Assembly: GCA_028023455.1 (NCBI GenBank)
Contig: JAQFVV010000006.1
Span: forward strand, 17,174,001-17,238,000
DNA length: 64,000 nt
Direction: 5' to 3'
Source: Epiperipatus broadwayi
Taxonomy: Eukaryota > Animalia > Onychophora
Of this stretch, positions 11,490 to 62,774 are shown piece by piece. The notes under the pieces were generated by a model. That model did no database searches and had not been told where the DNA came from. It saw only the letters and a program-made list of their open reading frames with translations. Position numbers and translations under genes: made by a program. Numbering within the stretch: the first letter of the stretch is position 1; every line of letters starts with the position of its first letter.

Positions 11490-11590
11490 GTCAAGCATTG
11501 ATAGCTGAGAGGTCAGCGCAACTGCCTTGCAGACGGTTGTTGTGGGTTCGCCTCCCAGTCGATGCTATGACATATGGGGGGGAAAAAAAA
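11490..11590 (+). mobile_element. tRNA-Gly-derived short SINE
   Basis: gtcaagcattg..agctgagaggtca...gggttcgcctccc.gtcgatgc tatgacatatgGnAn. Confidence 0.85.
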
Positions 11591-34879: not shown

Positions 34880-35134
34880 AAATATTTTCTTTATTCATTC
34901 ATTTATATATGTTTAATACAGGTTAGAATACATTTATACAAATGACATTTTTCTATTAAGCCTTAAATGCACTTTTAAGTAGAAGAAATAAGTACATTTT
35001 TTTTTATTCTAAATATGATACAAAATATGCTACTGATAATAACAATAAATTAAACTTCAATAATATGTATTAAATATACATAATAAAAATATAAATTGCA
35101 TTCTATTATTTATCTATATATATATTGCTAAGTA

Positions 35135-35268
35135 TAGAGGATTTGAACTCAGATTTTCAAGCACCCTTCAACTATCCACACTATCTCATACAACTGATAC
35201 ACATGACCACCCACATGTAGAAAAGATAAATAATCACCAATATACGTATTTCATGCTAAACCAGCACT
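35135..35268 (-). mobile_element. Partial hammerhead-repeat copy (stem II to B box)
   Basis: Reverse strand gtgctggtttagcatGAAATACGTATAttggtgattatttatc ... gagttcaaatcc; lacks CTGATGA. Confidence 0.8.
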
Positions 35269-36489
35269 ATATATATATTGCTATATTCTAAGTTACTGCT
35301 CTTCCCTTGTTTCCACTCTTTAATATATTTTGTAACTTGATTTTTTTAATTTCCCTGTATAAGTAAATTACTGAATAATTTAAGAACACAATGATTTCTT
35401 ATTTTAGTTTAATATTTATTATATTTTGAAACTATGTGCTTATATGTTTTTCTTAGGCACATTTCAAACTATTTTATACAAGGTTTTTTTCTCTATAAGT
35501 ATATATTCAAGAAATTGATTGAATAATAAAATATTATTTTTATATCCTCTTTTTTCTATTTGCTATAATTTTTTTTATATTAGATCAATTATTCAGTTTT
35601 GAAATAATGCTAATCTATTAATATTAGGAAAAGGCTTGCAAAACTATAGTTATTCCATATTTCTATAAAGATTCACATAAAGATTTATATATTAAATACA
35701 ACAAGAATATTTAAAGGAAAGATATTTTTGACTTTGTAAAATATTATTATAAAATATTTCTAAATTTATTAATTAATATGTTAATATGATGTTTCCAAGA
35801 CATTTTTTAAAAATCTATTATCAATCCAAGATATCTAATGTATTTTACTTATTCTACTTCTCTATACATTCATTATCATTAAATATTACAATTTTATCAT
35901 ATCAGTATTTTTATATTTGATGTGAGATAAGCATATTAACTAACATGTATTTGGTTTTTTCTCATTTATATGAATTCCTCTCTCAAAACACCAAAAGACA
36001 ATTTTGTTCACCCTTTCTTGACCTTCTGTAATTGCAATATCAATATTGTTATTCATCTGTATAGTGATGTATTGATCATTCAATATTAATATTTCTTTGC
36101 TAACTTATGAAAATTAGAAATAACAATGTTCTAAATATAGAATTTTGAGGAATGCCATATAATTTTTTTTAATCATTACTAAAATACATTTGATATGTTT
36201 GATACAACATATCTATTATTTAAATAATTTTTGATAGGCAATTTTATATATATTAAGTAAAATTAAAATAGCATAAAATATAATAAAGTTGAAAAAATAT
36301 ACTATTAATTGTTAATTTTGGCATGTAAGTTTTAAAATAGGACTACATCAAATTGTGATAAAATGAAGTTATACAATGATTACATTTCCAGAAATTTTTT
36401 GTAAAGAAATAGAGGTATCCACATAGGGAATGAGGGGAGGAGATGTCTTTCTTAACAAAATAGCTATTAGTTTATATAAAGCTTTTTAT

Positions 36490-40260: not shown

Positions 40261-40548
40261 CCTAGTGACAGAATGGCACCATGTAGTGGTAGCAATAATA
40301 CTTTCTTTTTTATATATGAACATTGATGGTAAACACGTTCACATCTGAGTAATTTTTTTCGAATAATTAGAAATACTTTTCATTTTTAACTTTGTACAAT
40401 GCAAACATATTTTAAAATAATTTTATTTCCTTAAAATTTCAGCTATCCTGCAGTCTTCTTCAGAACCACAAAGTATTCAAATTTATACAATTTTATATAA
40501 AATTAACCTATTCATTCAGTATACTGAATGTTTACAATAGCAAATATA

Positions 40549-40851
40549 GGGATTTGAACTTAGGATTTTCAGTCTATATTCATCCTTCACACTATCTCAA
40601 ACAACTGATACATATGACCACACTCATGCGAAAAAGGTAAATGATCCTCAATATATGTATTTGATGCTATCTTAATATAAGATTGTATATATGGTAGAAG
40701 ATTATGATCTGGCCCAACTGATGAATGCTGTTCTGTACAAAATAAATATTTGGGGGGTCATTTATCTCTTTCACATGTGTGATCATGTCTGTTGATTATA
40801 TGAGATGGAGTGGAGGATGAATATACATTGAAAATCCTAAGTTCAAATCCC
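40549..40851. mobile_element. Older inverted dimer of the hammerhead repeat
   Basis: Minus arm 40549-40668 and plus arm 40695-40851. CTGATGA at 40718 with decayed stems; both arms end at the B box (gttcaaatccc). Confidence 0.75.
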
Positions 40852-41524
40852 ACCATTTAATTATATATAAAGAAAAATATTTTGTTCCTCTGAAAGAGAT
40901 TGTTTGAAAGTCAAAACTGTAAGGAAATAAAATTGAGTGAAGAAAATATCAAGCTAGCTCTGCATAAAGTAAAAAAAGAAAAGTGATATTGATCATGTGA
41001 TCCAGCATTCATTGGTATTGATATTTTCCTCACTGGAAGTGAAAACTGTATAACGTTACAATGGCTTTTCTTTTTAATCAGCACACCGCATTCATTTGAT
41101 GAAGCCTGAAGAATTTGGAATCTTGGTAATAATAGATAAACATTCATGTTTTTGATTAACTGTGGCCAACTGTCTGAAAGTTATTGTAAAATCAATTTTA
41201 ATAGGCAGTTACTTTTGATAAATATTATTTGAAGGAAGTTGTGTGGCCGAAATTATTTACACATAAATTATATCTTTTTTTGTAAATTGTAAGCCTGGGG
41301 ACATTTTTAGCAGGTTAAACCACACATCATACATATCTTTGATCAGAGTAGGTAAGAAATTTAAATGTTTCATAGTCTCTTGGTTATTTGGGCTTTTACA
41401 TTGCTTGCACCTTAGTGAAAGCTCCAGGATAACTAAAATTATGGGACCAAATATTAAATGTTGATACATTCGAAGACACCATTAGACGTTTCTATTACTT
41501 GGTGCTACAGGGCTTTGCCAAATT

Positions 41525-46699: not shown

Positions 46700-48370
46700 A
46701 ACTATTTAAAATACCGATATCTCAGTTGCATGTTATGGTGGAAATAATTTGCAAAATGTTTACGTGTGAGTACCTATAAGTTTACTTTTGATAATGAAAA
46801 ATAGTTTAATAATGGGTCTAAAGAAGGCAAATAAAAAAAATAATTTTGGATCAGGCATAACTGACTTGAAGATTAGGATACATTTGACAAACCATAGACA
46901 GAAAGTTATGAACGTGACACTTCTTATAATTGCAAAATCCCCAGAGGTAATACCTTCTATAAGTGTGTTTATAATTGGATGTTTTGGTGTATAAATTTGA
47001 TTAATCAATATTCTACAGCTCTGAAGAGATGAACAATTGTTGAAAATGTGTGAAATATGGTATCATCTTCTCTATGGCAGAGTGAGCAAACAGGGTCCAA
47101 AGAGGAAAAACCTCTGTACATCACAAGAAAGTGACTTGTGGGAAGTGCATTGAGATTTAGCTTTAGAAGGAAGTCCAAATATTTTGGCTCTAGATTACAT
47201 TTTTTATATTTCTTTATAATGGTAAAGTTTGTACATGTGAGAATATTAGGATCTGGGATAATTTGTGAAAACAAAAGAAGATAGGCATCCCAATAACGAA
47301 GTTTCATTGGTTTTATTTTAGTTAAAGGTGTGAGAATTTTTGCAATGTCAATTAAGATTTGTGTCAGCCAACCATCATTAATTGGAGGTGGAGTATCTGT
47401 AGGATGAATAGATAGAAAAGGTGAGTCATCAGAAAAAATCCTGTTAAGTCTCGTAATGAGGTTATTTGATTTCTGTAGACAAAGAACCTGAAGTGAGTGC
47501 AGTGACAAGCCATTAAGTCTTGTTGGTCTCTGCACTCTTCTTAAGCTAATAGCAACAGTTTTACTCTTCCACATTAGTCTAGAGCAAAGAGAGTTTATAT
47601 TCTGGATAAATTTTGATGAGAATTTAATGAACGGCATGTAGTAAGCAATTCTGGGGAACAGGAACATGTTGAGAAGGGCTGCTTTTGCAAATAATGATGT
47701 ATAAACTTTTGAAAGTGAATCAATTATTTTTCTTGCAGAATTCATGATGGTGTCTTGTATTAATTTCCTCATTGCTGCATGAGATAGACTCATTGGTAAG
47801 CCTAAAAATTTTTGTGGCATAGCTGTGAAAAGGGATGGAATCGATTTTCCAGATGAAAGCCTCCATACAGCAGATTTTCTACGGTTAAACTCAAGACCTG
47901 ACTCTATGGTGAAATTGTCCATAATTTGAATTAGTTTCGGGATGAACTTTCTAGATGGTAAGAACACTGCCACATCATCCCTGTATGATATGTGCTGAAT
48001 TGATTTATTGATACCAGGAATGTACAATCCAGGAAGATTCATCTCTAATGATTTAAGGAATGAATTTATATATAGAATGAAGAGCAGGGGATTAAGAGGA
48101 GAGCCCTGTGGAATCGACTTGGTAGGTGTGAATGAGTTTGAAATTTTTCCATTTAGTGAAATGGCAAAATGTCTGTTGAATAGAAGGTTAATAATGATGT
48201 TCATTATACCTGTGGGAATGTTCAGACCACTTAGGAGATGTATTAGGTGAGGAATTCTGACAGAGTCGAAAGCAAAAAGATATCAAAGAAAGAGATTTGA
48301 AGTTAGCTCCTCTCATTATAGTAAATTCTACATGACATCTTATTAATATTGGACATTCCACTTTAAAAGA
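46700..48370 (-). mobile_element. L1/Tx1-like LINE ORF2 fragment (RT plus Zn motif)
   Basis: 399-aa ORF 47005-48204 with IPQGSPLNPLLF, YRDD, KFLGLP and CSLCHREDDTIFH; FAFDSV upstream after a frameshift. Confidence 0.9.
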
Positions 48371-49386
48371 ATGAGTTTTTTTTTTCTCTCCTTTTTTTTA
48401 AAAAGTAATTTAATGGTTTATAATTGTATTGACAAATTTAATATTTTAATTATTTTCTTTTATTATAAACATAGTTGAATAAACCTGTTTTTGATAAAAA
48501 AAAAAGAAGACAAATAAGATATAAGTCTAATAATAATAGCAAAAGTATGAAACATGGAATTTTTTAATGAATAATTATTATGAGAGTCTTAGAAAAACCA
48601 GAGTTTGTATTCCAAGGAATTCTATTTACAGGAGTACTGTTAATATTTACAAGCATGCTATTATCATTTTAGTGATACTCATAAAAAACAATTATATATT
48701 TAATTGCTTGGGAAGTCATGTGACATTTGAATGCTCAAGTGATGACAATGTGCTCAGCAGTTTGTTCAGATCATCAAATTGAGGCTCTTTTTTTTTTGTT
48801 TACTTAGCTAAGGATTAGTCTAAAAATCTTTAGCCTTTGAATCTGATATTCTGTCACTGTGCTAAATTACAGGGATTTTTTTAATGCTTATTATGTAATT
48901 ATTGCAACAGATGTATCTTTTCAGTTTGCTTTATTTTCTTTCTGGTTAATCAGAACCTCTCTTTTATATGGATGAGAGTTCTTTCCTTGATGGTTATCAT
49001 CCTGTCTAAATGGAGTATAAAATATATTATAATTCCTTTTAGTTCTTAATTCAAAATCTGAAAGAATGAAAAAAAGATCAAAAAGTAAAAATAAATAATA
49101 GGCCTGTGCCTATAGCTGGTGGACCTTTATTTCAATAGATAGATGAAGCAAGTTATTTTTATTTATTTGTTTTGTGATAGCAGAGTGACACTCTTCTGGT
49201 TAGTTCTTTCACCATCCCAGTGCAGATTAAAGTCTTTACATTTTTCAATAATCCCTGAGCAGAACATTTATTTCCATGAGTTTCTCAGTTTATGTCATCT
49301 TTGTCGTTATATTTAGTATTATTTCCATGATTATTAGTTGTTTTTTTAAAAATACAAATGCAGTATATATACTTAAGCTAGATGTA

Positions 49387-49645
49387 ATTAGAGGGGATTT
49401 GAACCCAGACTTTCAAGCTCTCTTCAGTCATCCATTCCATCTTCTCCAATGATACCACATGATCACATACATGTGAAAAAGATGGGATCTTTAATATATC
49501 TATTTCGTGCTGAAATGATGCTAGTTCAGCATGAAATATGTATATTGGAGATCACTTATCTTTTTCACATATATGTGTGTCAGTTGTATAAGATGGAGTG
49601 CATGACTGAAGAAGCTCGAAAGTCTGGGTTTAAATCCCCTCTAAT
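49387..49645. mobile_element. Fold-back palindrome of the hammerhead repeat, joined inside stem II
   Basis: attagaggggatttgaacccagac ... gtctgggtttaaatcccctctaat. Centre ~49515 reads tatttcgtgctgaa-atgatgctagttcagcatgaaata. Confidence 0.85.
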
Positions 49646-51974
49646 AATTGTAAATTGTAATTGTAGACAAATCTTCTAATACAAGTAAAAAAAGGTCATG
49701 TATTATCAGAACGTTTTTTTTAGTGATATTAGAAAAAATATAATCAATCAAGCAATTTGTAAATAAGCTGCACTAGTTTTTAAATATTATTTGATGTAAT
49801 CAAATAAGTACTTTTTTTTAACGTTTAAAATAATATTTTATATGTAATCATTATTTTTTAATTAAATAATTTAAATTGTATAGGATAGTTCACAAACTTG
49901 CCATGGTGGACTTAAGGTTTCTTAAACTTGATATATTATTGTTAGTATTAAGTAGAGAACTGAATACAAGTGAACTGATAGCATTACTGATTAACATCAC
50001 ATGATCACCATTTAGCAACTCTTCATACAGTAGTGCCACCCAGTGTAAAACTTAGTAATCATTGGGTGTAAGAAACTAGGGCAGATATTGGCTGACTAGG
50101 CACTAGATAAGGATTTTAAGCACAAATCTTCTTACATCCATTGATTATGGACAATTGTCACTTTTTTAGCATCACTGATTGGTAGATTCTTTGTTCTAAA
50201 GCCATGAGAGTACCTGTATACTCTTTTTTGTTTAACTTCAAAAAGAAAAATTGTATATTTTTCATAGTTTATTTATAATTGCAATCAGATTTTATTTGAC
50301 AAATTTGTTTTAAAAAAAGTTAGAAATTTAATGTGAATGGCTGCTAGTGAATGCCACAGAAATGGGTAGTGAAATGATTAAAGTAAGGTAATAAATAATT
50401 AATACAAAAATCATTCTTACAATTAAGTAATCATTTTGAGTGACCATAAGATTATAAGCATAATTTTTAGAAATTAAATAAAAAATTAGTATAATTATAT
50501 GTTAATGTTTAAAATTTTTAGAAAGTATACTTAGAAAAAATTTGGGAATTGCATATAGCATTGTGTCAATTTTTTTAAGATATATAAACAAGCATATACA
50601 TACAATCAGGTTGGTTGGCCTTTTAGATACACAGTTTTGAATAGTTTTATGTCACCAATTTAATAATCATTTATTCTGATTTTTATTTTTTCCAAAAAAA
50701 ATCTGATTTTTCATTAAACATTTACATTTTTTTAAAAATATTGTTAAAATTATAAAAAATAAAAATCTTAAAAATAAATTATTAACTTTGCTAATCAAAA
50801 TTAACAATTTCATTTTAGTCATCATGCTAAAAAAATTTATTTTAATAATTTAAAAAAACCCATTTTCATCTAAATTTTTATCAGTAAGACAAATTGTGTT
50901 AAACAATACATTCAGATAAACAAGTTATTTCTTAAAATATTAAAATTTGTTAATTGCAAAAAAAATAGTAACATTCTTGACAGTGGACATTTTTTATTTA
51001 ATAATGAGCACGTCTTGTTTTTTTAAAATAAATTTTCAGTTGATTAAATTTATTCTAAAAATGTAAATGTACTCAGACAAATATTTAATGTAAGCATCAT
51101 ATACTTAGTGAGGGACAAATATTTAATTTTTAGAAAAATAAAATGAAATAAATAATTAATTTATAATTCACATTTGTTTTCCAATCACACATTGAATAAT
51201 TTCTCACAAATGTGAAATAATTCTTCTGCTTAAATTGAGATTTTAACATTTATTAAAAGATGCTATCATCTAGGAATAAAATCAAAATATTCCAAGTTAT
51301 TACCATCAAATGGATGCAACAATTGCTATGATTTAATAACTGAGTTCAACTATAGTACCAACACACATTCAAGAATTAATGGGCAAGTAGGTTAGCATGT
51401 TGAAAAATTAAAAAAAAAATACATTTAAGGTTTCAATAACCCTTAGAGACCTGAACGGCCATTTTGAATTCCCAAAAAAAATTACAGGACCTACAATTTT
51501 AAATAAAATGTCTAATTTATTACAATAAATAAATATATATATATATACATTTTTATAAAGTGCAAATATGAAAGAATGTTATAAAGCTGATAAAGTAGTC
51601 ATTACCACAAAAAAATTAAAAAAAATGATATTTTTCACATTTTTAAAATCTTTATTTTTACATTGGTTCACAAACTCTCAATTTTGAAAGGTATAAGCCT
51701 AAAATGACAATTTCATAGACAGCTTCATCACATTTGTCATAAAATGCAGAAAAAAATAATATATAACATGACCTACCTGAGTTACAGATTGTTGGTGTAA
51801 TGTGGCAGAATGTGACAATTTCAGTTTCGTTTTTTTACTAACCAGCCTACATGTTCAATTTTTGCAAGCAGTTGTTTTTCTAGGCCCTCTATGCGGGATA
51901 TCTATTAGAAATGCAAGGTTTTAGTGTGGATCAAAAAAAAATAACAGTAATAACTTTAGTAAAGTGTAAGTTAT

Positions 51975-52470
51975 GGGGATAAAAAATAATTACTATATTA
52001 TTGAAAAATCATGGGCTAAATTATGCATTATTACATAGGAAACCATAATAGCAAAGTATGCTATAAAATGAATAAAAAGTTATCTACAATGAAATGAATA
52101 AAAATGTAGTAAATTCTAAGTTATGCATGTAAAAAATAATTACTACATTATTGGAATATCATGAGGGTAAGGGTGAGCTAAATTATGCATTATTACATAG
52201 GAAACCATAATAGCAAAGTATGCTATAAAATGAATAAAAAGTTATCTGCAAAGTATGCTATAAAATGAATAAAAAGTTATCTACAATGAAATGAATAAAA
52301 ACGTAGTAAATTCTAAGTTATGCATGTAAAAAATAATTACTATATTATTGGAATATCATGAGGGTAAGGGTGAGCTAAATTATGCATTATTACATAGCAA
52401 ACCATAATAGCAAAGTATGCTATAAAATGAATAAAAACTTATCTACAATGAAATGAATAAAAACAGTAAA
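51975..52470 (+). repeat. ~150-200-bp tandem repeat, ~3 copies with internal partial duplication
   Basis: gctaaattatgcattattacatag.aaaccataatagcaaagtatgctataaaatgaataaaaa recurs three times. Confidence 0.92.
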
Positions 52471-52555
52471 TAAAATAAAATAAATAACCCAAAGGAATTA
52501 CAAGCAATTATTATATATCAGTGGGAGATGATGATGATGACTGTTGAATACTTAC

Positions 52556-52683
52556 GGGTATAATGGGGAATACGGAACCTCAAAATCAAACACATCAACA
52601 GAAAAGTTCGTCAGAATCAAAATTACGTTCAGCGGTGAAAATAATTGTTTTCTCCGTATATTTTTTTTATCCATTGATAAAAT
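52556..52683 (-). CDS. Candidate coding exon (128 nt), protein not recognised
   Basis: tttttttctttctag|ATTTTATCAATGGAT...TTATACCC|gtaagt. Single open frame ILSMDKKNIRRKQLFSPLNVILILTNFSVDVFDFEVPYSPLYP; CpG-rich. Confidence 0.55.
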
Positions 52684-56112: not shown

Positions 56113-56562
56113 ATGTAAAACAAACCAGAAGAATATATATATAAATTAAATCAATAACAGACAAACGCAGTCTTCTATTTTAAAAATAGCCCATTAATTT
56201 CAATATATATATACAAAACAAAGCACATGCAAACTTCTTTATAAATCTTGAGTTATTATATGAATTATTATGAAGTACAAAAAATAATCCATTTCGACTA
56301 TATTCTTTTATAGTCTTTATCAAGGAACAACAACTTAACGTTTCTAACAAATAATTTTTCTAACAAAGTTTTGTTTATTAGAAAAGTTTTAAGTTGTTCC
56401 TTGATAAAGATTATTAAAGAATATAATCGTAACGGAGTATTTTTTGTACTTTATAATAATTCATATAATATATAGAGCATATGAGCACAGACTTTCACAT
56501 AACCCACCACTCTCCACTCCATCTAATAATAATGATACACTTAAACACATATATGTTGAAAA

Positions 56563-56632
56563 GATAAATAATCATCAATATACATATTTCATGCTAAACC
56601 AGCAATCATCAGTTGGTCCAGATTATCATCTC
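56563..56632 (-). ncRNA. Type I hammerhead ribozyme copy (decayed)
   Basis: Reverse strand reads gataatctggaccaa CTGATGA ttgctggtttagcat GAAA tatgtata ttgatgattatttatc. Core intact; mismatches in stems I and II. Confidence 0.8.
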
Positions 56633-57042
56633 TACTCATATATGCTATAAGTGCTCAGATATATATTAAGATAGACAATCATCATACTTTAATGGACAGG
56701 CTTCAATCTACTCCACATTCCAACTCTTCAACCGTCCATCCAATTGAAAATCTGATGATGGAATGCTCAAAGGCCACACTGAGGCCGAGATTCTTGTCAT
56801 ACCCATGTTGACCTAAGGTCAATCTGAACCCCACATGTACAGGACATAATCCATTTAATATATATGCAAGGATGGGCAGATATCTCTACAATGTAATAAC
56901 TGAAACACAGGCTTATTATATATCTGGGTCTGGATGGACGGTTGAAGAGTTGGAATGTGGAGTAGATTGAAGCCTGTCCATTAAAGTATGAAGATTGTCT
57001 ATCTTAATATATATCTGAGCACTTATAATATATATGTGTAGA

Positions 57043-57110
57043 GATGATAATCTGGACCAACTGATGATTGCTGGCTTAGCATGAAATACGTATATTGGTG
57101 ATTATTTATT
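57043..57110 (+). ncRNA. Type I hammerhead ribozyme, best-preserved copy of the ~480-nt repeat
   Basis: ACCAA-CTGATGA(57061-67)-TTGCT GGCTT AGCAT-GAA-ATACGTAT-A^TTGGT. All core residues are present. Stem I ACCAA/TTGGT extends to GATGATAATC/GATTATTTA across a TGG bulge. Only the 10.1-11.1 pair is mutated (T.T). Predicted cleavage 3' of 57094. Confidence 0.88.
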
Positions 57111-58129
57111 TTTTCAACATATATGTGTTTAAGGGTATCAGTGTTATTAGATGGAGTGGAGAGTGGTGGGTCATGTGAAAGTCTATGCTCATATGCTCTA
57201 GATATTACATATATAGACACAGGTATATAATAAGCCTGTGCTTCAGTTATTAAATAATTCATATAATAAATCAAGATTTATAAAGAAGTTTGTTTATAGT
57301 TTGTTTTGTATATGTATAAATTATAATATTATTTAAATATAGGGGATTTACAATTAAGTTCCAGGTATAAGAATGTCTGTATTTCAAATATTATTTATCA
57401 AAAATTTCGCTGTTTTTATGTGCATCTATATGTCAGTACACAAACATATTTGGTACTTTTATTGTTGTGTGGATCCCATTAAACATCGTAACACACTTTT
57501 TTTCTATGAGGATTTGATTATCATTTATCACGAATTTATTATTTGTCCCTCTCCCCTCGTGAATTAATTAAGTGGGAATAGCAGATTAATACCGACATAA
57601 AATATTTGATATTTATGTACTCGCATGTATTTTTTATTATTATGGAAACGAATTTTTTTATTAAATGTAATTCATTTTTAGCGTAAAATGTATTATTTTA
57701 AATTACTTAGTTATATGTTATTAATTTTTCAACGTAGTTTTTTTTATTTAAATGTCCCCCCCCCCTCTAATCATTGTGAAGAATTGATTCAGTCTGATCT
57801 TCGAATTAGTTGATTTTTCTTTATTTATTATGCTTTAGAAAAAGTTAAACGCTCCTGACCTCTAGGGGAAGTTGAAGAAAATTAAAATTATTATGTAATA
57901 GCAATTGATAAATACCAGAAAACTTTATTGAGAGAATACATTACACAATGTTTTTAAATCAGTAGATGTTATAGAGCGTCTGCCGTTCTCTTTAAGACAG
58001 AGAAAAGGAATTCGTCTTGCTCTAGTTAAAGTAAATAATAAATATAAAAATCAAGGAACATTTTAATAATAATATTATAATTTTGAAAGAAAGAAAAAAG
58101 ATAAACTTATAAGTTAAGAATTAGTTATC

Positions 58130-59600
58130 ATTTAGTCCTTATCTCTTCATTGCAGGATGAATATTTCTTCAACCGTTATCTAGTCTTTACTATCAGTAAC
58201 TTAATTTACGTCGATCCAGAAATATTTATCTTTACATTCATTTTGCACTTGATCTCTTTCTAGATCTTTTATATAGTGTTGAGATAATAATTTCAATTCT
58301 CTATATATAAGTAATCCAACTTTATAGCAGTCTTTTGATTCTTTTAAGTTTTGTCTGTGATATCTATTCGTTTTCTCATTCAAGTATTCTTTCTTTGTTC
58401 CTCTCAAGTTATATTTCTCAACAATCTCAACTTTTTCTATTGCTTTTCTAAATTTATAAATAAAAACTGGAAATTATATTTACTAAAAAGCTTCTTTTTT
58501 ATGCAGGTAGCATATGTTCAGGTTTTTTCTTTATACTAAAAATACTCCATCCAAGTTTAACTCTATGATATATTTTCATCTATGTTAATAATGTGATCAA
58601 GACATTTATATAAGTTGTTCACTTTTTCTAAATTATTGTTATGCTATATTTTGCCTTTATTTGAAAAGCTTTTTGAACACCGCTGTATATTTTTTAGCAT
58701 TTATCTTTGATCCTACTTTCTTATTTTCATCTGATAGTTTTTGTTAACATTTCCTCAACTGCTAAGTGTATCATCTGCAAAATCTAGAGTCTTAAGATAT
58801 CTCTGTTTATTATTATTCCTTTAGTTTTCCAATTTAATCCACCCAATATTTTTCATAAAACTGCTGTAAAAAGTTTTGAAGATATGGAATTTCCTGGCCA
58901 TCTACTCTTTATATTTTGTTAGCCCACTTAGTAGTCTCATGATTGCTGTTCCATTTTGGTAAAATATTTTTGAGAATTTGAGACTAATATGAGACCCTGT
59001 TTTGATGTTCCAAAGCTTTATCGCCATTGAAATGCATATAGAGTCAAATGACTTCTTCATCATTACAAATCCAAAGTTTAATGGCAACTCATATTCATTG
59101 GCCCTTTTTATAATTTATTTTAATATTTGGACATGATTTATTATGCTAAAACCTCTTTCAAATATAGCCTTTTTTCGTTATTCTCAACCCAAAATTTTCT
59201 GTATATAAGTTACAATGATTTTAATTAAAAAAGTCTAGTGACTGATAGATCTCTATTTTTCAATATCTTTTTTTTCACTTTTTTTTAAGTATTCATATCA
59301 CTATTATTCATCTGGTATATCTTTAATATGCATTTATTTGGTTTATGGCTTTGCCAATACTAATTTGACTATTACTTTTCCATTTTTCACAGATTTGATT
59401 CCATGCATCATCTTCTTCATTTAAAATAATTCAAAGTTTTAAAGATGTAATTGTAGGAATATAGTTTTATTATAGAATTCTTTTGCACATTTTATGATAC
59501 CTCTTTTTTTTGTAAATAATAATGTATCCTTTTTATTTATTGCTAAAATAATATTCCTTCCATTATTAAAATGTTGCAGATTTCTGAGATTTTTTCTTTC
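58130..59600 (-). mobile_element. RTE-like LINE RT (decayed)
   Basis: ANEYELPLNFGFV..KKSFDS, GNSISSKLFTAVL, DFADD; RTE 3' terminus near 58140-58170. Confidence 0.85.
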
Positions 59601-59689
59601 TTGCAATTATTTTTTACCTCTGATTTTGTTCTCCCAAAATTTTGCAATCAAAATAACATGTTGCGCACAGTAACTTTTTTTGGGACTTT

Positions 59690-59915
59690 GGTATTTGATC
59701 TGCTGTGAAATATTACAGCGATAATTATTCCAACTTTGCGATCTTGTAAAATATATTGGATTGGGGGAGGGGGGCAATCACAATTATATCTTTATAGATC
59801 CACAAACCAGTGTCCACACACAGAATATCGAAAAATATTGGCATTGGACCAAATGGCGGAATAAAAAATGAACGTTGGCTGAATTTATGTGGAGGAGAAT
59901 ACACAAAGAAGAAAT
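59690..59915 (+). mobile_element. Merlin (ISXO2/IS1595-like) transposase relic
   Basis: One frame: NHNYIFIDPQTSVHTQNIEKYWHWTKWRNKK*TLAEFMWRR, matching the NH..F.DP.TG.HTQ.IE..W / EF.WRR motifs. Confidence 0.8.
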
Positions 59916-61115
59916 GTTATGCTTTCATTTCCATTTTGGAGGACAAAAAGTTCAGTCTGATCCACTGATTGCTTATTATTTTGATATTGGAGTAAAGAAA
60001 TTGATTGATTAAGTTTGTTCAAAGATTCTGTGAAGGCATTACTTTGTGACATTGCAAAGTTAGATATTTAACAGCAGGTCTAATACCAAAGAAACCTTTT
60101 TAAAAAACAAACAAACACACATTTAAACTGCAATGAGATCGCATTTTTCATGATGATACCAAAAATAACTTGCAATAAAATGTTTTTCTTTTTTTTAAAA
60201 AAAGCAATACCAGTATTATCTTTCAAAAGTAACCTTTATTAGTAAAACGATTACAAAAATTTTGGGTACACGTACCCATTGAGAATTACAAAGTGTTCAA
60301 TGTAACAGACAAGGTAAAACAATTATTGATTATATAAAGTAAATATATAAATTATATAAAGTAAATAAAGTATTATGAGTATTCATAGAGTATTAAAGTG
60401 CATAGAATGTTTACATTAACTTTTGCAGCTTACTCCCCTCACCCCAAATGTTTGTTAAGATTGGAAAGTTTCTGATACTTGTTTCAAAATGAAAAGCCTA
60501 TATCATCTTTTCAATGCATGAAACCCTGATATAAGAGTTGTTTATGAAGAGTAAAAAGGAAATTTGCACTTGGAATACATGAAGTGTGATTAATCTGATA
60601 AATTGCTTGTTTAATGTAGAAGACTAGATTTTTTAACAATTGAATGCCTTGATAAAATTATTGTAAGAAATAGAACTAAGAGAATAGTTTATCTGTCACG
60701 TTTATTTGAGATGGATTCATTGTTGTTTGGAGTAGTGTCAGATTAGCTGACTTGGTAGTCAAGGTCTATGAACTGTGGCCCAGCCTTTTACTTCCTATGT
60801 TTGAACTTAGCATGAGTTCCAGAGCAGTAAATCATTTGATCATTTATTTTGGATATTATTTATTAAGGTAGATTTAGACAGATCCACTTTATTTATTAAT
60901 CCCTTTTTCTAAAGTATCAATTTAACTAAATCATTTACATGTTGTTAATATTCGAGAGCTATGTTAAGCATTGGTGAATTCTGAAAATTGCAGATGAAAG
61001 TAAATAAATAAATCTTCAAGATTTTCTTTGCCAATAGTAAAATATTCTATGAATGTGAAAAATGTTGGTGTTCAACATCACAGAACTTTCTGAGCGTACT
61101 ATTTCGATATTTTTT

Positions 61116-61116
<1 letters not shown>

Positions 61117-61166
<50 letters not shown>
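61117..61166 (+). repeat. (AC)25 microsatellite
   Basis: Perfect dinucleotide run. Confidence 0.98.
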
Positions 61167-61169
<3 letters not shown>

Positions 61170-61935
61170 CCTCATCCATTTTATTTAACGTGCATTTAAT
61201 TTTTAAAAATCTGCACTAACAATAAATGCAAAGTTTTGTTTGTAATTATTTGGGAACATTATTTTATTTTTTTCAAAAAAACTTTTCTAAATTTCAAATT
61301 CTCAGAAATTGCATGATTGCTTTTTAATAACAAGCCGTCTCAAACTACTTATGGACAGAAATTAGTCATTAGTTTACATGACACTTGCCAATTCCAATAA
61401 TTGAGCAGTTGAAATGCTATCTTTTCTAAAAACCCCGAAATTATCTACAAGTGGAAAGAAAGAAGAGTTCAGGAAAAGAAGCTGACCAAAATAACTGTGA
61501 ATTAGTTTTCTTTGGAAGGTATAATTATCTTTAGGTCTTGTGATGTCCAGCTCACTTTGCTTTTCTTGGCCATTTTTCAAGAATTGAAAATAATGACAAG
61601 GAAATCATATTAAAAAGGGAAAGTTGATTTTATGATTATTTAGTTTTTTAAAAAAGAGAGGATAAAATCAAAATGTGTGCAAATATGTCTATGCTTAGAT
61701 AATGATGTATGTGTGTTCCTACATATAGAGAGTCTTGAAGCAAATGCAGTCATTAAGAAGAGTAATTTAAAATCGATTAAATATATGAGTGGTAACCAAT
61801 CTAAGAATTAAAATTATAAGAATTATTGTCCTTCAAAATCAGCTGTACGATAGATTGGGGCTTACGGATTAAAAAGACACTGAAATCCTGTAATAAAGTT
61901 TAAAAAAAAACGAAAAAAATCTATATAATCTATTA

Positions 61936-62055
61936 TAAATGTAGGGGATTTAAACTCAGACTTTTAAGCACCCTTAACTATCCGCACTATCTCACACAAC
62001 TGATACACATGACCATACACATATAGAAAAGATAAATAATCACCAATATACGTAT
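61936..62055 (-). mobile_element. Inverted partial copy of the hammerhead repeat, truncated at the ATACGTAT palindrome
   Basis: Reverse complement of 62112-62232; the arm ends in caccaatatacgtat. Confidence 0.85.
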
Positions 62056-62067
62056 TATATGTGTGGG

Positions 62068-62136
62068 AGATGATAATCTGGATCAACTGATAAGTGCTTG
62101 TTTAGCACGAACTACGTATATTGATGATTACTTATC
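62068..62136 (+). ncRNA. Type I hammerhead ribozyme copy (core mutated)
   Basis: atcaa CTGATAA gtgct tgttt agcac GAAC tacgtata ttgat. Perfect stem II with G10.1-C11.1, but G8>A and A15.1>C. Confidence 0.78.
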
Positions 62137-62547
62137 TTTTCTACATGTGTGTGGTCATGTGTATCAGTTGCGTGAGATAGTGTGGATAGTTGAAGGGTGC
62201 TGGAAAGTCTGAGTTCAAATCCCTTACATTTACAATTAAGCTCCAGGTTTGTGAAGAGTGCCTAGTTTTCAAATATTTACACATGAAGCTTGTATCCTGC
62301 CCATCCCTCTTCTATGCATTTAAATGGATAAGGTCCTATACATGAGGGGTCAGAGTGACTTCAGGTCAACATGGGCATGGCAATAATATTGGCATCAGCA
62401 TGGGATTTGGGCTTTCATCATCAGATTTTCAAGGATATGGTTGGCTGAAAAGTTGGAAGTTGGAGTAGATTGAAGCCTGTCCATTAAAGTGTGAATATTT
62501 GCTATCTTAGTATAAACTGAGCACTGATTATATATGTGTGTGTAGGA

Positions 62548-62608
62548 GATGATAATCTGGACCAACTAATGAGTGCTGGTTTAGCACGAAATATGGTGAT
62601 TATTTATC
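62548..62608 (+). ncRNA. Type I hammerhead ribozyme copy (core mutated, stem III deleted)
   Basis: accaa CTAATGA gtgct ggttt agcac GAAA tatggtgattatttatc. C3 lies at 62566, 479 nt downstream of C3 of the previous copy (62087). Confidence 0.75.
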
Positions 62609-62774
62609 TTTTCTACATGTTTGTGGTCATGTGTATCAGTTGTGTGAGATAGTGTGTATAGTTGAAGGGTGCTTGAAAGTCTGAGTTCAAATCCCTATAT
62701 TTACAGTTATGTTCCAGGTTTGTGAAGAGTGCCTGGTTTTCAAATATAATCTACTATGGAACTATCAAGCTCAC

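Follow-up and report, generated by a model that had tools for sequence, protein, structure and literature searches.

Newt satellite 2, Schistosoma Sm-alpha and Dolichopoda pDo500, all types in the Rfam RF00163 seed, are repeated non-coding DNAs carrying a type I hammerhead ribozyme with a short palindromic stem III, which can be extended through the pairing of two motifs. The family described here, found in a 64,000-nt stretch of Epiperipatus broadwayi DNA (the window), also bears such a hammerhead on repeated non-coding DNA. Nevertheless, its sequence similarity to these systems is limited to the core, and its copies are dispersed insertions with target duplications instead of satellite blocks.

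The original prediction had placed the family among the metazoan non-LTR retrozymes, and it does match the kind named by Cervera & de la Pena 2020 (PMC7229834), with examples in coral, mussel and axolotl. In both cases, a type I hammerhead lies in non-coding, AT-rich repeats, each a few hundred nucleotides long. These repeats form dimers or multimers, number from thousands to about 10^5 copies, have target duplications of more than 4 bp, and possess a stem I predicted to pair both ends of the unit RNA. By contrast, the arrays seen here are single-event arrays of 1.2-2.8 units and not long tandems, and the 479-nt unit is at the upper end of reported sizes. Its hammerhead is the minimal-stem-III, dimer-type variant, which the same paper reports in vertebrate retrozymes. 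The family is an animal non-LTR retrozyme that adds a new member to an already described kind, and what is new for it is the insertion anatomy.

Penelope-like elements have been proposed as mobilisers of this kind of element (PMC7229834; Li, Clavereau & Pollet 2026, bioRxiv 10.64898/2026.07.22.740005), and partial tandems, an inverted 5′-truncated partner and a one-sided tail are listed for them by Craig et al. 2021 (PMC8557442). The family shares with Penelope-like elements and their non-autonomous derivatives, as described in the latter two studies, 5′ truncation, partial tandems, an adjacent inverted 5′-truncated copy, a one-sided tail (30-40 bp there, 42-47 nt here), variable target duplications and a hammerhead near the 3′ end, and it co-occurs with a large Penelope-like population. 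In contrast to them, it has no ORF, and its sequence is unlike the 3′ ends of the approximately nine lineages sampled. The motif in the 3′ UTRs of these lineages is a different one, in which the core is non-canonical and stem I is very short, whereas in the family the core is the canonical CUGAUGA and stem I has 17 bp. The hammerhead is also farther from the 3′ end, at 112-159 nt, than in L059, the only sampled Penelope-like copy for which the 3′ end was located; there it lies about 15-25 nt away and runs into a (TA)n repeat.

Copies in the window and in the genome

A covariance model trained on family copies was used to locate the motif within the window, and it recovered the same eight places that had been named earlier (Table 1). 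Words of 25 and 26 nt from the motif match the window five and four times, respectively, and neither has a match in 100 shuffles. As had been anticipated, every window copy is damaged, and none passes the hammerhead descriptor. For instance, the copies at 56.6 and 57.1 kb have a U at both 10.1 and 11.1, that at 62.07 kb carries the core changes G8>A and A15.1>C, and that at 62.55 kb combines G5>A with an 8-nt deletion in stem III, while in those at 35.2 and 62.03 kb the truncation falls within the motif. The window copies are all old relics under neutral decay.

The original prediction had treated 56473-62745 as one feature. In fact, two independent insertions lie in this span, at 56470-57252 and 61936-62743, and neither the monomer nor Penelope-like element proteins match the approximately 4.7 kb that separate them. 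The direct tandem that had been described is present, with starts at 62069 and 62548 and a spacing of 479 nt. It is not, however, a satellite-type array, since the architecture is of the Penelope type (partial tandems, inverted partner, one-sided tail) and the pair is therefore a single integration event.

Table 1. Features of the hammerhead family located in the window
Feature	Position	Strand	Remarks
Target-site duplication, perfect 16 bp	35115-35130 and 35268-35283		16-mer at these two window places only; flanks the 35131..35267 copy
Single 5′-truncated copy, monomer positions ~28-168	35131..35267	-	Ends at short 3′ end; break point inside hammerhead stem II
Motif copy	35217-35289	-	Family covariance model
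Head-to-head unit, older, diverged, related subfamily	40536..40862		Arm 40536-40669 (-); (+) arm bears decayed hammerhead; no clear target duplication left
Motif copy, decayed	40696-40774	+	Family covariance model
Head-to-head unit, older, diverged	49383..49650		Arms 49383-49514 (-) and 49519-49650 (+)
Motif copy, remnant	49477-49568	+	Family covariance model
Target-site duplication AATAATTCATATAAT, 15 bp, left copy	56455..56469		Two window occurrences only
Head-to-head (3′-ends-out) insertion, related subfamily	56470..57252		Arms 56470-56879 (-) and 56934-57252 (+), 280 nt at 95% complementarity; 42-nt tail 57211-57252, right arm only
Motif copy	56555-56634	-	Family covariance model
Motif copy	57039-57118	+	Family covariance model; predicted cleavage site between 57094 and 57095
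Target-site duplication AATAATTCATATAAT, 15 bp, right copy	57253..57267		Flanks the 56470-57252 insertion
Target-site duplication ATATAATCTA[T/C]TA, left copy	61923..61935		13 bp, 1 mismatch; initial 4 bp could equally be element end
Inverted 5′-truncated arm, monomer positions ~47-170	61936..62054	-	Short 3′ end outward; inner end within stem III palindrome
Motif copy, 3′ third only	62023-62082	-	Family covariance model
Motif copy	62065-62144	+	Family covariance model
Full 479-nt monomer, core damaged	62067..62545	+	Hammerhead 62065-62144; predicted cleavage site between 62120 and 62121; one stem I pair altered on both sides, C-G to U-A
Motif copy	62544-62616	+	Family covariance model
Partial second monomer, positions 1 to ~210	62546..62743	+	Ends at long 3′ end; hammerhead 62544-62616; tail at 62704-62747
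Target-site duplication ATATAATCTA[T/C]TA, right copy	62744..62756		13 bp, 1 mismatch vs left copy

Genome-wide, the expectation of a high-copy non-coding family with a monomer of about 480 nt is borne out. For the 5′ half of the motif (36 nt), there are 97,839 copies at up to 3 mismatches (reversed control, 0), that is, roughly 10^5 copies in a 5.6-Gb genome. Units measure about 476-479 nt, have a GC content of 38-39% and contain no stop-free stretch longer than 61 aa. The consensus derived earlier from the window is also the dominant sequence of the genome, where the exact 44-nt core from ACCAA to TTGGT is found intact 291 times, or in 0.3% of copies, against none for the reversed control. 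Thus, intact cores do exist elsewhere, but the active source that had been proposed does not follow from them, as their frequency is not above the expectation for neutral decay and chance survival. Divergence among copies averages 6.2% and is even along the unit, with the hammerhead no better preserved than the remainder.

Hammerhead architecture and evidence for the fold

As had been claimed, the full architecture of a complete type I hammerhead can be recognised in the motif. Each unit has the canonical core, a 5-bp stem II with G10.1-C11.1, a minimal stem III of two A-U pairs flanking the palindrome AUACGUAU, and a long, bulged stem I, which is predicted to join both ends of a unit-length RNA. 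Hammerheads with a minimal stem III cleave best as dimers in newts, axolotl and Penelope-like elements. An intact copy aligns to all 45 positions of Rfam Hammerhead_1 with the expected helices, although its 15.2 bits are far below the gathering score of 34, in which the family differs from the RF00163 types; an Rfam scan of the window returns no hammerhead at the gathering score or at E<=10. For the 80-nt domain, the hammerhead fold has an energy of -12.8 to -14.8 kcal/mol versus -19.4 kcal/mol for the predicted minimum-energy structure.

Pairing was assessed on 16 copies drawn from several subfamilies: 92.9% of cells are paired, compared with 32-56% when the partners are slid. The covariation expected of a functional fold was found in part. 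Stem I shows compensatory pairs at columns 11-65 (A-U in nine copies, G-C in six) and 18-61 (A-U or C-G), but none were seen in stems II and III, where they were also sought. Positions 10.1 and 11.1 are weakly associated (odds ratio 1.7), which copy age could explain.

Insertion anatomy and mode of spread

The family spread by Penelope-type target-primed reverse transcription. Ends were mapped in 76 arrays from 41 loci, in which the 3′ ends form two clusters, at monomer positions 154-176 and 208-221, and the 5′ ends are scattered. Measured from the predicted cleavage site, the 3′ ends thus have two fixed positions, about 112 nt (short) and about 159 nt (long) downstream, and that site coincides with none of the 5′ ends in these arrays; therefore, the template ran across it, in either an uncleaved or a religated state. 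Partial tandems longer than one unit are common among the insertions, and many insertions bear an inverted 5′-truncated partner, such that both 3′ ends face outward. Direct repeats of 9 bp or more flank 17 of 26 such head-to-head units, compared with 1 of 43 controls, and the duplications range from 9 to 16 bp. One long and one short end are combined in 24 of the 26 units (P=5e-6), and a tail of 42-47 nt with a small hairpin is on one side only, also in 24 of 26. The claim that this is a retroelement is upheld by the target-site duplications at three window insertions (exact over 16 bp, exact over 15 bp, and 13 bp with a single mismatch), the fixed 3′ ends and a 5′ truncation that is general.

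This anatomy reproduces the published hallmarks of Penelope-like elements, and the family is therefore probably made up of non-coding, non-autonomous hammerhead retroelements, copied by Penelope-type machinery supplied in trans. Multimeric transcripts would be cut to unit length by the hammerhead, the units may be closed into circles by a host RNA ligase, and a Penelope-like reverse transcriptase/GIY-YIG endonuclease would do the copying. Because units may be circularised, reverse transcription could run round the template and produce tandems longer than one unit. More than 10,000 Penelope-like gene fragments and many intact ORFs are present in the genome, and this large population includes ORFs of 800-901 aa and copies 96-99% alike. 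The window contains no Penelope-like coding remnants. Among the approximately nine lineages sampled, no autonomous partner sharing sequence with the element was found.

Other readings of the family

Most subfamilies have a B-box-like word, GAGTTC[A/G]AATCC, just before the short 3′ end, with an A-box-like TAGTGTGG some 30 nt upstream of it; the tail contains a T4 run, and a LINE-type RT ORF lies in the window (47005-48204). These features would fit a tRNA-derived Pol III SINE in which the hammerhead is no more than a passenger, as in Schistosoma Sm-alpha, and which was mobilised by a LINE and not by a Penelope-like element. Such an origin is improbable, as ARAGORN detects no tRNA in the window, the Rfam tRNA model gives nothing at E<=10 in the B-box-like region of a copy from a related subfamily (L035), and the B-box-like word is absent from the related subfamily at 56.5-57.25 kb. 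In addition, the 3′ ends have no poly(A) or simple-repeat tail, and inverted units with 3′ ends outward and a one-sided tail are Penelope-like, not LINE or SINE, traits. It is highly improbable that the copies are instead 3′-terminal remains (solo pseudo-LTRs) of a Penelope-like element that is itself autonomous but has nearly always lost its coding part by 5′ truncation. Penelope-like insertions are heavily 5′-truncated and have hammerheads in their pseudo-LTRs (PMC8557442), and the sampling took in only some of the many lineages in the genome. Nevertheless, successive units join seamlessly with a period of 476-479 nt and no coding sequence between them, the 1.5 kb around each of the 41 loci contain no Penelope-like coding remnants, and the element is unrelated to the 3′ UTRs sampled.

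Amplification at the DNA level, by unequal crossing-over of a satellite or as a fold-back or inverted-end DNA transposon with a fortuitous hammerhead-like word, can be given almost no credence. The palindromes formed by many copies do resemble fold-back elements or MITEs, and Rfam gives microRNA-like hairpin scores, such as the spurious microRNA-family match at 49383..49650 that results from the long hairpin of this unit. Against this, arrays are short and scattered over all contigs, inner junctions vary between copies while outer ends are fixed, the duplications vary in length, and the full 13-nt core and three helices are kept across subfamilies. A rather unlikely reading, although one with some weight, is that the hammerhead is a real relic from a Penelope-like ancestor without a role in the life cycle, the template being an ordinary linear transcript. 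It agrees with the lack of coincidence between either type of end and the cleavage site, and tandems can arise from Penelope-like template jumping alone (PMC8557442). Furthermore, subfamilies with the U10.1/U11.1 mismatch, which is found at several loci and in each arm of the 56.5 kb unit, multiplied too, and thus spread may not require full ribozyme activity. In favor of a role for the hammerhead, decay of the C11.1-G12 CpG is asymmetric, with 6746 cases of the tolerated TG (G.U wobble) versus 3139 of the lethal CA (G12>A) genome-wide and 41 versus 7 in the fetched loci, whereas in these loci the decay of the stem III CpG is symmetric (18 to 14). This asymmetry suggests that an intact core was required in source copies, and diverged subfamilies conserve the core while their flanks differ.

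Hammerhead motif in the window and in the genome

The hammerhead repeats in the window belong to a very abundant family that adds to the known animal retrozymes, non-autonomous retroelements that bear a hammerhead and are mobilised by Penelope-type machinery. The original prediction had placed hammerhead motifs at eight places, and all of them were recovered by a covariance model for which 16 copies drawn from several subfamilies were aligned to the predicted secondary structure (see the table). The starts of the two direct copies described as a tandem pair are indeed separated by 479 nt. Short words taken from the motif have 4-5 matches within the window, against 0 in 100 shuffles. As had also been claimed, each window copy carries a core or helix defect, and 0 pass a hammerhead descriptor. 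They are dead relics, and no function for the host is evident. By contrast, the single span proposed for the family (56473-62745) had joined what are actually two separate insertion events, with about 4.7 kb between them that match neither the monomer (the 479-nt unit at 62067-62545, forward strand) nor Penelope-like proteins.

In the 5.6-Gb assembly searched, the monomer had 9,030 candidate relatives at first look, the best of which are 90-93% identical, and the motif's 5′ half (36 nt) found 97,839 matches at three mismatches or fewer, while the reversed pattern found 0. The intact 44-nt core, exactly as reconstructed in the predicted consensus, is present 291 times (control, 0), with two of these copies 479 nt apart at one genomic locus (L063:1823-2381). 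The bases required for a type I core (C3 U4 G5 A6 N7 G8 A9, G12 A13 A14, A15.1-U16.1 and H17) are complete in these 291 copies, for instance at L063:2318-2363, and in none within the window.

Judged by its architecture, the motif is a type I hammerhead, for which self-cleavage is predicted. When an intact copy is compared with the Rfam Hammerhead_1 model, as had been suggested, positions 1-45 align and the core is surrounded by three helices, of which stem I is open, as in the type I topology; nevertheless, the score of 15.2 bits (E=0.25, for a 90-nt stretch) is below the gathering threshold of 34 bits. A-U pairs are frequent in the stems, and only two pairs make up stem III, around the palindrome AUACGUAU. 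Rfam scans of the window (gathering score and E<=10) and of 62 kb of fetched loci gave no hammerhead match. Paired cells make up 92.9% of the alignment of 16 copies, compared with 32-56% when the partners are slid by 1-3 columns. Compensatory changes are seen in stem I only, where four pairs are changed on both sides (for instance, A-U nine times and G-C six times at one pair, and A-U or C-G at another); stems II and III have none, and their variation is uninformative. The association between positions 10.1 and 11.1 is weak (odds ratio 1.7).

Stem I is long, with 5+7+5 bp and both a UGG and a U bulge, and the fold predicted for an RNA of unit length prolongs it into a long helix that links both ends (z = -1.8, a modest value). 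The stem III palindromes of two copies can pair in a predicted dimer cofold, the rest of which differs from the catalytic fold. Minimal hammerheads of this type are known to dimerise via stem III in this way (PMC7229834). A full-text literature search with the core sequence returned no paper, and nothing specific was found on cephalopods, Penelope and hammerheads together.

Features of the hammerhead family in the window, and examples of Penelope-like copies at fetched genomic loci
Feature	Coordinates	Strand	Remarks
Single truncated copy	35131-35267		Perfect 16-bp target duplication
Older diverged head-to-head units (two)	40.5 and 49.4 kb
Head-to-head unit, sister subfamily	56470-57252		Arms 95% alike; perfect 15-bp duplication; 42-nt tail on right arm only
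Inverted arm plus 1.44 direct units	61936-62743		13-bp duplication, one mismatch; left, short end; right, long end
Motif copy	35217-35289	-	Covariance model
Motif copy	40696-40774	+	Covariance model
Motif copy	49477-49568	+	Covariance model
Motif copy	56555-56634	-	Covariance model
Motif copy	57039-57118	+	Covariance model
Motif copy, partial	62023-62082	-	Covariance model
Motif copy	62065-62144	+	Covariance model
Motif copy	62544-62616	+	Covariance model
Penelope-like copy	L055:4300-7002
Penelope-like copy	L056:4588-7242
Penelope-like copy	L059:4779-7178

Insertion anatomy and probable Penelope-type mobilisation

The anatomy of the insertions was obtained by mapping the monomer onto 41 genomic loci of the family. 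Their 3′ ends are fixed, falling either at monomer positions 154-176 (the short end, ...GAGTTCAAATCCCCTATACTTA(C)) or at 208-221 (the long end, ...CCTGGTTTTCAAATATTTA(C)), and directly adjoin unique flanks with no poly(A) or simple-repeat tail. Cleavage is predicted after monomer position 54, which leaves about 112 and 159 nt between that site and the two downstream ends. The 5′ ends are scattered, with frequent 5′ truncation and partial tandems, and many insertions are longer than one unit, to a maximum of 2.8 units with a period of 476-479 nt. In 26 cases, an inverted 5′-truncated arm adjoins the 5′ end, giving a head-to-head unit in which both 3′ ends point outward. Target duplications of variable length are seen as direct repeats of at least 9 bp that flank 17 of these 26 units, compared with 1 of 43 controls sampled 120-160 nt further out. 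In 24 of the 26, one end is long and the other short (P=5e-6), and thus the 47 nt between the two ends (42 nt in a related subfamily) constitute a one-sided tail. Insertions without an inverted partner end mostly at the short position.

A short sister subfamily at three of the fetched loci (L033-L035; for example, L035:1300-1642) has an identical, intact hammerhead, but its 3′ part differs: ...GAGTTCGAATCCC continues into an extension peculiar to it, 70 nt or longer. The subfamily occurs as head-to-head pairs, with arms of about 130-155 nt.

Penelope-like elements are heavily truncated at the 5′ end, form partial tandems, have an inverted truncated copy beside them and carry a tail of 30-40 bp at one end only (PMC8557442), and all of these structural hallmarks are matched by the insertions of the family. 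The family is non-coding, with stop-free stretches of at most 61 aa, and its GC content is 38-39% against 27.9% for the window. It is best read as a non-autonomous element that relies for its copying on Penelope-type machinery acting in trans. The B-box-like word directly before the short end in most subfamilies, with an A-box-like word about 30 nt upstream of it, might instead recall a Pol III-transcribed SINE. Neither ARAGORN in the window nor the Rfam tRNA model in the B-box-like region of L035 (E<=10) gave a match there, and the 3′ ends do not carry the tail of poly(A) or simple repeats. This origin is a minor alternative.

Retrozymes are recognised by tandem repeats of 150 to about 1000 bp that are non-coding and AT-rich and contain a type I hammerhead; a further trait, which would be predicted for this family too, is expression as linear and circular RNA one unit long. 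The family has non-coding repeats of this kind, with its 476-479-nt period, although its arrays do not exceed 2.8 units. Such elements were named metazoan non-LTR retrozymes by Cervera & de la Pena (PMC7229834), and a 2026 preprint on vertebrates argues that retrozymes there derive from Penelope-like elements and are non-autonomous (bioRxiv 10.64898/2026.07.22.740005). The retrozyme class originally proposed was thus correct in outline, and the insertion anatomy refines it to a Penelope-mobilised element.

The genome holds a very large Penelope-like population, with 10,242 GIY-YIG candidates and open reading frames of up to 800-901 aa. At least about nine lineages were sampled, and eight of the loci (L055-L062) hold copies that are 96-99% alike in the same lineage and 44-48% alike across lineages. 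About 300-400 nt past their stop codon lies a hammerhead-like motif whose core is non-canonical and whose stem III is ACGU (...CCTTGAAAA[T/A]GAC...GTCGAAACGTTGG). The sampled Penelope-like 3′ UTRs carry a motif different from that of the hammerhead family and have no sequence similarity to it. Likewise, no 3′-end similarity to an autonomous Penelope-like element was found among the roughly nine lineages. Searches of the 20 Penelope-like loci with the monomer and the covariance model gave only incidental family copies (L049 and L061) and a decayed relative (L051), and the hammerhead descriptor found no canonical motif in them. A tblastn search with Penelope-like proteins found no coding remnants in the window or within 1.5 kb of the 41 family loci. 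The partner may simply be unsampled, because the sampling is small compared with more than 10,000 GIY-YIG candidates.

Published support for the proposed mobilisation of animal hammerhead repeats by Penelope-like elements consisted of co-occurrence and pseudo-LTR similarity in vertebrates. The insertions of this family provide direct structural support for such mobilisation of animal retrozymes, comprising units with their 3′ ends outward and target duplications, a tail on one side only, and 3′ ends that are fixed but lie off the predicted cleavage site. With about 10^5 copies, the family is a large natural data set on how Penelope-type integration works, and it can also show whether the ribozyme counts for spread. 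What the present analysis adds is this clear insertion anatomy together with an asymmetry in CpG decay.

Decay of the copies and the possible role of the ribozyme

Decay is even along the unit, with a mean divergence of 6.2% from the majority base (31% at CpG positions), and the hammerhead is no better preserved than the rest. Intact cores (0.3%) are no commoner than expected from chance survival, and thus give no evidence of an active source. Of eight runs of Logan contigs, of unclear molecule type, the four that were aligned contain thousands of pieces that are 85-99% alike, from several organisms. Contig depth is greatest over the hammerhead module, which fits a module common to several subfamilies and relatives; starts, ends and strand are unreadable in these contigs, and they have no bearing on transcription.

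If copies decayed after insertion in a strand-symmetric manner, a CpG would be expected to yield TG and CA equally. At the C11.1-G12 CpG, genome-wide counts with the other 24 nt kept exact are 2,731 CG, 6,746 TG and 3,139 CA, a 2.1-fold asymmetry, and the fetched loci show the same inequality (CG/TG/CA = 31/41/7). Decay of the stem III CpG in these loci, in contrast, is symmetric (37/18/14). The two products at C11.1-G12 differ in their consequences: TG gives a G.U wobble and leaves G12 intact, while CA destroys this essential base. The excess of the tolerated TG suggests that many copies derive from U11.1 sources, and dead-core sources would appear to spread less. The asymmetry is an indirect hint that the ribozyme matters for spread. 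A mutation bias at the RNA or cDNA level may also account for the excess, and U10.1/U11.1 subfamilies multiplied as well, so that spread may not require full ribozyme activity.

As the 3′ ends lie off the predicted cleavage site and no 5′ end coincides with it, the template must have spanned this site; it could be either an uncleaved multimer or a religated circle. A joint reading of these features, which is tentative and rather unlikely, is that a Penelope-like reverse transcriptase recognises a 3′ module and starts at two fixed points on a circular template cut by the hammerhead and religated. The module would comprise the B-box-like word, the short end and the tail of 42-47 nt with its hairpin (CCAGG..CCTGG, or CACAGG..CCTGTG in a sister subfamily). 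Each of the two staggered nicks in a single target would be extended from its own fixed point on the template, one by default directly upstream of the tail and the second strand from the end of the tail, and the circular template would give products exceeding one unit. If true, the family would record, naturally, simply and at very high copy number, how Penelope elements integrate and what part the hammerhead plays in this.

Other features of the window

The extra inverted repeats around the unit at 56470-57252 (I10 and I17) are present because this unit landed inside an older fold-back repeat, whose halves (56204-56469 and 57268-57318) it splits. Nearby, at 57330-57392, a tiny head-to-head fragment joins 12 nt of the reverse-complemented short-end region directly to a 46-nt tail, in keeping with the pattern in which one end is short and the other long.

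The only Rfam matches in the window scans are microRNA families, arising from palindromic arms, at 49398-49634 and 62001-62166; a further match lies at L063:1688-1871. They comprise MIR7533 (E=4e-11), mir-3149 and MIR4208, all far under their gathering scores. Since the inverted arms would form long hairpins if transcribed, these matches are no evidence for microRNA genes.

On the reverse strand, an open reading frame of 399 aa at 47005-48204 matches RVT_1 (E=1e-13) and, weakly, zf-RVT; this fragment of a LINE-type reverse transcriptase has no relation to the hammerhead family. A near-threshold tRNA match at 11495-11566 on the forward strand (27.6 against 29 bits), not called by ARAGORN, could be a tRNA pseudogene or the head of a SINE. 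Finally, a tandem repeat of about 197 nt at 52018-52573, also unrelated to the family, has three copies that are 65-90% alike.
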